Of a stretch of 63,986 nt of DNA, positions 29,278-31,060 are shown in pieces. A program made the position numbers and the translations under genes. Under the pieces are notes generated by a model. It had not been told where the DNA came from. It ran no database searches and saw only the letters and a program-made list of their open reading frames with translations. The stretch is taken from the NCBI RefSeq assembly GCF_001194135.2, contig NC_068986.1:14775283-14839268 (forward strand), read 5' to 3'. The number at the start of each line of letters is the position of its first letter. The stretch's first letter is position 1. This stretch comes from Octopus bimaculoides. Its lineage: Eukaryota.

Positions 29278-31060
29278 ATGGATTTTGTACCATTCAAATA
29301 CGAATCAGAGATTGAGGAATTGACATTTCTATCAATGAAAAAAATTAATCGGTTTCGTGCTAAAATCAAAAGATATTTATCATTACTTGAAACATGCAAA
29401 CAAGAAAATATTATACCGGACGGTCTTGCATCAAATATACCAATGTCGGCAGCACAGCCTGACGATTCATTGCTTCAAAAGTTTAAATTCATTGATGAGA
29501 GCTATTATTGAACCCTATCGTTCAAAATTACCATTGCTTAGTGCAGTCATTGAGGAGATTTTGAGTATCCTTGAACAGGTATGTTCTTAAAATATCTTGA
29601 ACTATTTGTATAACTGTTTGATGTACCTTGAAAAAACGGAAATTTCAGTCCTGAAGACCAAAAAAAAAAAAAAAGAAGAAAGAAAAAAANNNNNNNNNNN
29701 NNNNNNNNNNNNNNNNNNNNNNNNNNNNNNNNNNNNNNNNNNNNNNNNNNNNNNNNNNNNNNNNNNNNNNNNNNNNNNNNNNNNNNNNNNNNNNNNNNNN
29801 NNNNNNNNTGAAAATCGTAGCGGAACATTTTCCTGAAATTCCAATACAATCGATCATTTCTTCTCACACGGAATTTCCAAGATTTCGTCCACACCGCACA
29901 CTGTTCATTCATCCCACCGGGAACAATCAATTTGTTTTGTCGACTAATTTTTCCGGAGATGTTCATATTTCTGACAGTTTGAACTTACCAATATCACAGG
30001 GACTAATAACACAAATAACAATGCTGTACTTACCACAAACACACATGATTCCTACAGTACAATAATTTCATATAACTAATCCCCAAGTTGGCGCATATGA
30101 TTGTGACCTTTTCGCCCTGGCGTACGAATTTGAACACGTCACTGGAAACGCTCTGGAGTAGTTTTTATTTGATCAGTCAAAAATGCAAGCACATTTAAAA
30201 TTTTGCCTCGAAAACAATAAATTTGTTCTTTTCCCGGAAGTAAAGGCTTTTCAAATGTCTACAAAAACCACAGAATTCACTCACTTGCTATCACCCACCC
30301 ACCCAGAAATGGCTTACTCCCAGAAAGACGAATAAAAATTATAACTTCTCACATGGACATTCAGAAGAAATTTTATCACCCTATAAGGTCTATGTTTTAA
30401 CTGAAGATTTCGAGCAAAGCTCAAAGCGTAGTCGAGAATCTAATGTGAGTAAGACTCTGAAAACCACTTGCTCGAGAAAAACCATCACACTAGAGAATAA
30501 GTCGGTTATAAATTTATCTAAACAAAACTTTCGTCCGACGATGTCTCAGTCTTTGAGTTTGAACGGAGTTTCTGCCCAAACACTAATAATTTCGACAAGA
30601 ATAAACTAGATCAAGGGTTATTTCAGTTTGTCCACCGTCACAATCTGAAGGAATATTTTTTTCGAAAAAACTTGTAACGATGAGCCAGAAAACGCTATGC
30701 TTACTGAAAATAAAAATGATGATGATCGAATCTGGCATAATTGGATTGAAAAGAATCCCAATTGATATCCAGATAAAGTTCGGGATGAACGTTCACAAGC
30801 ACTATTGGAATTTCTTGAATCTTGTCAGACAGGCATTAGAGAAAGCCTTCAATCAAATGGACAGAAGTCCTGGAATAACCTTACAAATTCCAAACGTTAC
30901 GCACTCCGACCTCTAGCTAATGACGATTCTATTGTTATTAAAATGGCGGATGAGGGCGGTGCTATCTTCAGTATCGACAAATGTGACTATATTTTGGCTT
31001 GGGAAGAATTTTCAAAGCCCAAAACTTCGTATGAAGAATTACCTGTCGATCCCATAAGCA
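29278..31060 (+). pseudogene. Penelope-like element ORF, N-terminal about 600 codons (RT core absent), containing a Ulp1-like protease domain
   Basis: ATG at 29278; KINRFRAKIKRYLSLLETCKQENIIPDGL (PLE N-terminal C..x.IIP.GL); SVINLSKQ; FCPNTNNFDK...FQFVHRHNLKEYFF; KNPN*YP; NNLTNSKRYALRPLANDDSIVIKMADEGGAIFSIDKCDY (IKxADKGG motif); YEELPVDP. Several frameshifts and stops, and one 119-N gap. Confidence 0.85.
29811..30240 (+). pseudogene. Ulp1/SENP-like (clan CE, C48-like) cysteine protease domain
   Basis: One frame with two stops: LFIHPTGNNQF...VHISDSLN...QITMLY...NPQVGAYDCDLFALAY...GNALE*FLFDQSKMQAHLKFCLENNKFVLFP. His site = CAA/Gln at 29928, Asp at 29973, Gln at 30084, Cys at 30102. Confidence 0.8.

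Follow-up and report, generated by a model that had tools for sequence, protein, structure and literature searches.

Can a Penelope-like retroelement (PLE) encode a cysteine protease of its own? The question is raised by a locus in Octopus bimaculoides, where a reading of the DNA letters by themselves (hereafter the original prediction) had placed a Ulp1/SENP-like cysteine protease inside the open reading frame (ORF) of a PLE; canonical PLEs encode a reverse transcriptase (RT) and a GIY-YIG endonuclease (EN) (Craig et al., PMC8557442). The window that we analyzed is the whole stretch of 63,986 nucleotides from contig NC_068986.1 (positions 14,775,283 to 14,839,268); it is AT-rich, dense in microsatellites and broken by 20 gaps, and all positions below refer to it. 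It contains a dead, rearranged PLE insertion of the C-terminal-endonuclease type, at 29214-31074 on the plus strand together with 29261-28272 on the minus strand. Comparison of this copy with its intact relatives indicates that the joining of a PLE ORF to a clan CE protease is a real and conserved architecture of one lineage. The original claim that a PLE family carries such a domain is thus borne out, by profile and fold evidence, by intact ORFs and by a clade recovered with the RT as seed.

A dead Penelope-like copy in the octopus window

Three-frame translation of 29200-31300 reproduced every motif quoted in the original prediction, including a 143-codon segment in frame 2 that begins at 29811 and runs to 30239. 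The ATG at 29278 and LLETCKQENIIPDGL are both in frame 0, and the K-rich end KTKKKKKEERKK, in frame 1, enters the run of N at 29690-29808. The frame-2 segment 29811-30305 contains TGNNQF, SDSL, PQVGAYDCDLFALAY and FDQSKMQAHLKFCLENNKFVLFP; a CCCACCCACCCA run at about 30300 marks a frame change, beyond which an open stretch reads into SVINLSK; frame 2 then gives FCP and LKEYFF, and frame 0 gives IVIKMADEGG. By TBLASTN and by region-specific hidden Markov models (HMMs), the plus strand maps in order onto amino acids (aa) 65-690 of long homologues, and its conceptual translation aligns in order with aa 65-690 of the homologous protein P0009 and aa 65-679 of P0154. The region HMMs matched the N-terminal domain at 29314-29505 (E = 9e-11) and 29486-29674 (7e-8), the Ulp-like domain at 29808-30239 (4e-37) and the DKG region at 30496-31059 (2e-35). 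The features of the plus-strand copy are as follows.

29260..29277, plus strand: 2A-like remnant EPNPGP (codons read; matching motif in 18 long homologues and in P0155)
29278..29689, plus strand: N-terminal PLE domain, with FL..C......P.GL read as LLETCKQENIIPDGL, a helical stretch and a K-rich patch (HMM; alignment with P0009 and P0154)
29690..29808, no strand: assembly gap inside the ORF, at the A-rich K-patch (P0009 aa ~213-268 fall in the gap)
29808..30299, plus strand: predicted Ulp1/SENP-like clan CE protease domain, decayed (profile, HMM, fold and codon evidence)
30301..30495, plus strand: linker after the protease, entered via the CCCACCCACCCA frame change, with the clade-specific KW..P[KR]K read as TQKWLTPRKTNK (alignment)
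30496..31074, plus strand: pre-RT PLE region with VINLS, FCP, WYP and the DKG motif, the last read as IKMADEGG (HMM; P0009 alignment to aa 690)

The description of this copy as dead is correct. The codon for the catalytic His has become CAA (Gln) at 29928, so that the copy itself lacks the catalytic signature of clan CE, and the DCG motif reads DCD (Gly to Asp) at 30105; the Asp at 29973, the oxyanion Gln at 30084 and the Cys at 30102 are retained. Stops stand at 29588, 30063, 30159 and 30763. The single frame shift originally placed near 30300 is present, but further changes occur at ~29500, ~30523 and ~30660, making at least four; the N-terminal domain accordingly reads in frame 0 up to 29499 and in frame 1 from 29501, with the stop at 29588 inside it. 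The counterpart of the DKG motif is IKMADEGG, as opposed to KPADKGG in homologues. Homology stops at 31074 with no RT downstream on the plus strand, and no second copy of the PLE was found elsewhere in the window.

Since the sequences on either side of the gap align in order with homologues across it, we take the two flanks to follow one another within a single ORF. On the left, the frame-1 reading ...YLYNCLMYLEKTEISVLKTKKKKKEERKK lines up with the K-rich patch of homologues (P0009 ...STKKKKKLQ), and the right flank begins at P0009 aa 269; ~56 residues are missing, compared with 119 N, or ~40 codons. The gap was probably caused by the A-rich run. A candidate intron starting at CAG/GTATGT (29578) was rejected, as the K-rich stretch downstream of it aligns in frame 1 with the K-patch of homologues and is therefore coding. 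In the helical, K-rich part (window 29500-29810), ~100 residues that the window copy and distant relatives keep are missing from the octopus-like paralogue P0155; this shortening is either a deletion variant or the product of a spliced gene model.

The protease-like domain and the lineage that carries it

Neither the decayed pieces of the window nor the homologue P0001 matched any Pfam or PDB entry alone, so a family profile was needed. The profile search that had been proposed as a check thus gave clan CE once the family profile was used, as did the fold search. In the databases the segment is closest to a UniRef protein of 183 aa from Octopus bimaculoides (70% identity), named 'Ubiquitin-like protease family profile domain-containing protein' by its source, and a HMMER search with this octopus homologue collected 1,130 relatives at E <= 1e-3. 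No contig matched the exact sequence of P0001. Five residues (H51, D66, S67, Q102 and C108) are invariant in 35 aligned family members and fall in the Ulp1-type motifs HIHH.G.HF, YDSLN and Q.G..DCGLFAIAYA. Searched against PDB, the profile gave the Ulp1-like SUMO protease 6dg4 as its top match (E = 1.5e-5) and SENP1, SENP5 and SENP8 as the next (E 0.017-0.11), all with the catalytic residues in register. At E<=1, 18 of the 35 members match Peptidase_C48 (PF02902), the strongest with 9.2e-5, and P0071 exceeds the curated cut-off for that family; a few of the 35 match YopJ or RickCE, both also clan CE. An AlphaFold2 model of the domain (pLDDT 82, pTM 0.76) found only clan CE folds with Foldseek, in 47 of 47 matches at E ≤ 0.001, including adenain, pS273R of African swine fever virus (ASFV), XopD and YopJ-type proteins. 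SENP5 aligned with E = 4e-7 and a template modeling (TM) score of 0.63, and SENP1, SENP2, SENP3 and Ulp1 gave TM ~0.6. Profile and modeled fold together identify segment 29811-30305 as a decayed clan CE domain of Ulp1/SENP type, and in the lineage at large the domain is apparently catalytic.

A role other than proteolysis, as a module binding ubiquitin-like proteins or as an acetyltransferase of the YopJ branch, would leave the architecture itself intact. Three of the 35 members have weak YopJ (Acetyltransf_14) matches, and PopP2 and AvrA are among the fold matches. The catalytic H, D, Q and C are invariant, however, within Ulp1-type DSL and Q.G..DCG motifs, and SENPs match best while the TM score to YopJ is only ~0.4; we regard such a role as quite improbable.

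The domain lies inside complete PLE polyproteins. More than ten intact ORFs of 1,100-1,460 aa, with <50% mutual identity, were found on contigs of 4.1-5.4 kb from ENA and JGI metagenomes, each with the protease at ~aa 235-420. Their order is a leader of ~60 aa with a hydrophobic helix, a 2A-like [SG][VI]ExNPGP, a helical, K-rich N-terminal domain, the clan CE protease, a linker, the DKG (N1-N3) region, RT, a thumb/HTH region, an (I/V)xGG site and GIY-YIG. The undivided ORF with a catalytic His that the original prediction had said to look for thus exists, and the His is invariant in all 35 aligned members. Pfam places RVT_1 at ~aa 750-1,030 of long homologues and GIY-YIG at the C-terminus of P0002, P0013, P0020, P0025 and P0084, with a sub-threshold match in P0007; the precomputed Pfam annotation of P0009 and P0154 reads DUF8422, RVT_1, HTH_animal, GIY-YIG, and from this order DUF8422 probably corresponds to the pre-RT region, 30496-31074 in the window. 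DUF8422 was also considered as the protease and rejected: proteins with the N-terminal and protease parts alone have no DUF8422 match. The homologue alignment shows the PLE hallmarks KPADKGG (DKG), LPKIHK...RPICSG, R.IDD and a GIY-YIG with Cys/His motifs; a PDB search with full-length P0154 gave no match. Terminal overlaps in loci L001 and L003 imply tandem or circular units of 4,459 and 4,305 nt, and tandem signals are also present in L002 and L007. Rfam hammerhead models (E-value mode) found nothing in window 24000-36000, where the copy's 3' end is lost to a gap, or in L001-L003; hammerhead ribozymes are absent from some PLE clades (Craig et al., PMC8557442).

Closest to the window copy is P0155, which at 72-76% identity carries the 2A-like motif (read as DPSVEPNPGPMDF), the N-terminal motif, the protease with H/D/Q/C, the linker, VINLSK and FCP in one open frame. 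In this family, then, the protease stands between the N-terminal region and VINLS. Nor was the domain found moving independently of PLE flanks: among the 35 best homologues, every one with informative flanks lies in a PLE ORF. The 150 best relatives comprise 47 with PLE flanks, 83 fragments too short to tell and 20 with other or unknown flanks; all 20 rank 36th or lower, and fusions to PKD channels and to a YqaJ nuclease are among them. Distant members of the Ulp-like family (P0135, P0144 and P0145; P0089; P0159 and P0171; P0071) sit in such other settings, namely the C-terminus of polycystin/PKD-channel gene models, beside a YqaJ-type nuclease, in PHD fusions as in Ginger1, and in a tandem domain pair. 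The PKD-channel gene models with an Ulp-like domain are likely to be chimeric predictions joining transposon and gene.

To get an evolutionary perspective independent of the protease, we used an RT-only alignment as the query against JGI metagenome contigs and scored 80 loci with the per-region HMMs. Besides L001-L003, only L004 and L006-L009 have a protease inside the PLE ORF, and their RTs are >= 41% identical to the query. Where RT identity is 31-39%, the loci show the DKG region, RT, thumb and GIY-YIG, and no protease in the ORF even at maximally sensitive settings; in eight protease-less loci the N-terminal domain is joined directly to the VINLS region. One of them, L015, has an intact Neptune-like ORF of 959 aa (352-3231) with a plain ATG start, no 2A-like motif, a CX4CxxC linker and the N-terminal motif joined directly to VVNLSS, and from its sequence it is a natural protease-less comparator. 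Opposite the protease-less PLE of L068, on the minus strand and outside its ORF, lies a partial Ulp-like match (E = 1e-8), probably an unrelated fragment nearby.

A neighbor-joining tree of 88 RTs from metagenomes, which gives relative placement only as it includes no named reference PLEs or TERT, put all 18 protease-bearing RTs in one clade of 22 (bootstrap 96/100), with the other 66 outside. The four extra members of that clade are exactly the contigs without upstream sequence. Given this monophyly, we conclude that the domain was acquired once, by insertion between the N-terminal domain and the DKG region. Mean pairwise identity within the clade is 51% for RT, 45% for the protease, 40% for GIY-YIG and 22-23% for the flanking linkers. 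The protease is thus the second most conserved region of these ORFs, which argues for selection on it.

The same observations bear on whether the juxtaposition is accidental, that is, whether an Ulp1-carrying DNA transposon or a host SENP-like exon is nested in the PLE, or unrelated contigs were joined over the 119-N gap. The gap does separate the N-terminal motif from the protease, and the locus is rearranged with many frame changes. Against this, the same order and spacing recur in more than ten intact ORFs from independent contigs and in the open frame of P0155, the junction from protease to VINLS (30300-30522) lies in continuous sequence, and the protease-bearing RTs are monophyletic. A nested insertion or assembly chimera is contradicted by these three results, and we consider an accident extremely improbable.

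The 2A-like leader and a candidate Gly-Gly site

In 18 long homologues the motif DP[SG][VI]ExNPGP occurs at aa 17-153 (~60 in most), preceded by a conserved M.DL..YR.RIG start and a hydrophobic stretch. The window reads AEPNPGP at the corresponding site. The ATG at 29278, originally taken as the start of the ORF, is not so, since it follows EPNPGP directly and the ORF of relatives continues upstream. Compared with canonical D(V/I)ExNPGP, the D is replaced by S or G, and an Asp stands two residues further upstream (DPS[VI]E); because of this deviation, its skipping activity is only putative. The 2A-like NPGP and hydrophobic leader are conserved in the protease-bearing PLE clade and absent from the protease-less sister PLEs examined.

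The sole conserved Gly-Gly in the full alignment stands in the linker that joins RT to EN, as (I/V)xGG with N, K, T or S in the next position, 9-10 residues ahead of the GIY core (P0154 aa 1155-1156). It is present in 9 of 10 full-length proteins, in 8 of 9 clade loci and in the minus-strand copy of the window, and at the same position in 0 of 37 protease-less loci; L061, of which the protease status is not known, also has it. Ulp1, the SENPs, adenain and ASFV pS273R cut after Gly-Gly, adenain at (M/I/L)xGG↓x with a hydrophobic P4, and ubiquitin and NEDD8 end in LRGG.

Because these clan CE proteases cut after Gly-Gly and the clade has its own Gly-Gly before the endonuclease, we favor processing in cis. 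The mechanism, which we put forward tentatively from these sequence patterns, would combine a 2A skip with a cut at (I/V)xGG that releases the endonuclease. Translation would skip at NPG↓P and so release the leader. The embedded Gly-Gly-specific protease would cleave the polyprotein that contains it, at the one conserved (I/V)xGG, and free the endonuclease from RT in the way that clan CE proteases of adenovirus and ASFV cut polyproteins after GG. The protease may also strip SUMO or ubiquitin-like modifiers, as the two roles are not exclusive. In the window copy nothing of this would work, with the His changed to Gln, four stops and at least four frame changes.

A second account keeps the same architecture and has the protease act only in trans, as an isopeptidase that strips the host's SUMO, ubiquitin or NEDD8 modifiers (SUMO marks of transposon silencing, for instance, or of DNA-damage signaling at the insertion site); the GG would then be merely a structural feature of the clade's endonuclease. 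The best matches in structure and sequence are indeed SENP/Ulp1 deSUMOylases, not viral processing proteases, and the catalytic His still has an aromatic neighbor on its C-terminal side (HF or HW). The domain family also occurs with PHD fingers and YqaJ nucleases, and Ulp1 domains occur in Ginger1, MULE (Mutator-like) and Crypton elements, which have no polyprotein (PMC2836005, PMC3212892). An enzyme acting only in trans, however, leaves the clade-specific and otherwise unique (I/V)xGG beside the endonuclease unexplained, and the domain is compact (~155 aa), with no conserved first tunnel Trp evident in its consensus. We place this account second, somewhat less probable than processing in cis.

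Several observations weigh against cis-processing combined with a 2A skip. The association of GG with the protease rests on one clade, hence on one evolutionary event, and could be explained by shared ancestry alone; moreover, the specificity of the GG was judged without reference Penelope or Poseidon sequences. P0020 and L009 have an intact protease without the GG, no consistent GG flanks the protease itself, and sister PLEs function with RT and EN fused. The polyprotein-free settings of related Ulp-like domains (PHD fusions as in Ginger1, YqaJ fusions) favor a host-directed role. The S or G in place of the canonical D of the 2A-like motif, and the lack of a hammerhead ribozyme in the regions searched, count on the same side.

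The inverted partial copy and related mobile elements

Upstream of the plus-strand copy, and head to head with it, lies an inverted partial copy with the following features.

29214..29261, minus strand: leader/2A remnant, SALLVSLDPSVEPKPG (14 of 16 residues identical to P0155 aa 3-18)
28852..29230, minus strand: C-terminal half of RT from motif B (VNFANVF) onward (HMM 6e-14; TBLASTN)
28563..28835, minus strand: RT thumb / HTH_animal-like region (HMM 1e-10)
28272..28421, minus strand: remnant of GIY-YIG that has lost its middle part, with the clade-specific Gly-Gly ahead of it (IYTEGG, then TC; GG at 28409-28404) (HMM; alignment)

The GIY-YIG remnant extends into a gap at 27709-28195. The best matches of the inverted RT are P0009 and P0154, placing it in the same sub-lineage as the plus-strand copy, and the N-terminal half of RT (~aa 691-852) is absent from the window according to the region HMMs. 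At the junction is a 15-bp inverted repeat, 29216-29230 / 29256-29270 (CCAGGCTTGGGCTCA / TGAGCCCAATCCTGG, 14 of 15 positions matching), both arms of which encode EP(N/K)PG. Neither a simple inversion nor a twin-priming-like origin fits the arrangement cleanly, because the minus-strand leader/2A piece sits between the two parts. An inverted 5'-truncated copy beside the 5' end of a PLE, with trouble in assembly, has been described (Craig et al., PMC8557442), and here too an inverted partial copy adjoins the 5' end of the window copy.

Roughly 100 bp past the end of plus-strand homology is a (TAC)n microsatellite (31176-31215); PLEs favor microsatellite targets (Craig et al., PMC8557442). The microsatellite also overlaps a weak and probably spurious U4 snRNA match at 31104-31235 (29.7 bits, where the gathering score is 46). 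Elsewhere in the window, minus-strand ORFs at 46883-47239 and 50255-50683 flank a gap at 48928-49880 and have no Pfam match, as is the case for the other window ORFs searched. We presume from their resemblance that these two ORFs are parts of LINE-type retrotransposon proteins.

The nearest described relatives are Neptune-type PLEs with a C-terminal EN (L015; Arkhipova 2006; Craig et al. 2021, PMC8557442), which likewise have FL..C..P.GL, a VINLS/DKG region, an RT with LPKIHK and RPICSG, a thumb and a Cys/His GIY-YIG. Tandem and inverted 5'-truncated copies are also shared, and some members of the protease-bearing clade keep the CX2-5CxxC linker of Neptune-type PLEs. Unlike these, the clade has a protease of ~155 aa and a linker between the N-terminal domain and VINLS, a leader bearing a 2A-like motif where those have a plain ATG start, a GG before the endonuclease, and no hammerhead detected.

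Among other retroelements, NeSL-1 and Utopia-1_TSP (PMC4640811) are single-ORF retrotransposons with an Ulp1-like cysteine protease N-terminal to RT. They differ in being nematode elements without long terminal repeats (non-LTR), with a restriction-like endonuclease and zinc fingers, whereas here the RT is of PLE type and the endonuclease is GIY-YIG; the resemblance is one of design only, as the comparison is of layout and not of protease homology. These two also qualify the original statement that Ulp1 domains are cargo of DNA transposons, which holds for Ginger1, MULEs and Cryptons but is incomplete. Ginger1, Mutator-like elements, CryptonF/S and Zisupton (PMC2836005, PMC3212892) do carry a clan CE accessory domain of function not known, fused to the transposase or in a separate ORF, and have no RT polyprotein; PHD+Ulp proteins as in Ginger1-9_HM turn up among the more distant matches of the clade's domain.

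Chlamys-1_cBra, itself a PLE, and Dualen likewise bear a cysteine protease module of deubiquitinase type on a retroelement ORF, a Josephin-like motif (PMC8557442). That module belongs to another protease clan, forms a C-terminal extension and occurs in another PLE group (N-terminal EN, green lineage). The accessory domains given for Chlamys are PHD, SAP, zf-CCHC and the Josephin-like motif, with Ulp1 not listed (Craig et al., PMC8557442). Adenain and ASFV pS273R, clan CE fold matches too, score lower than SENPs (TM ~0.5), with no evidence of common descent beyond the clan.

As to the leader, 2A-like peptides are reported for APE-type non-LTR elements (Odon et al. 2013, cited in PMC12338488 and PMC13405545). 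These and the N-terminal 2A-like signal sequences also place NPGP near the ORF N-terminus after a hydrophobic or helical tract; the difference is that the host element here is a PLE and the putative 2A motif is DP[SG][VI]ExNPGP, with S or G at D. In the searchable literature we found no report of 2A-like peptides in PLEs, and full-text searches, with Repbase reports and subscription papers outside their scope, found nothing linking Penelope-like elements with Ulp1, C48, a SUMO protease or 2A. As far as can be searched, a PLE lineage with an Ulp1-like protease and a 2A-like motif is undescribed. Databases already tag the domain automatically (UniRef name, Pfam DUF8422), but current labels for the clade's ORFs are 'ubiquitin-like protease profile domain' or DUF8422 only, and in gene models they are joined to host genes, PKD channels among them.

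PLEs have been described with few accessory domains; here an entire clade of PLEs, with members in an octopus-like genome and on many contigs from marine metagenomes, has kept a protease whose conservation exceeds that of the endonuclease, together with a 2A-like signal and a remodeled linker between RT and EN. It is conceivable, though unlikely, that gene expression in the lineage resembles that of a small RNA virus, the ORF being divided by a 2A skip and by an encoded GG protease that frees the EN, and that the same enzyme is a deSUMOylase or deubiquitinase blunting SUMO-dependent silencing. If so, animals would have a first example of an anti-silencing enzyme encoded by a retroelement, and there would be a clue to why so many unrelated transposons carry Ulp1 domains. 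The repeated uptake of Ulp1 by such transposons (MULE, Ginger, Crypton, Zisupton, NeSL and Utopia) becomes a testable question, and this clade supplies intact ORFs, protease-less sister elements and one specific candidate cleavage site.

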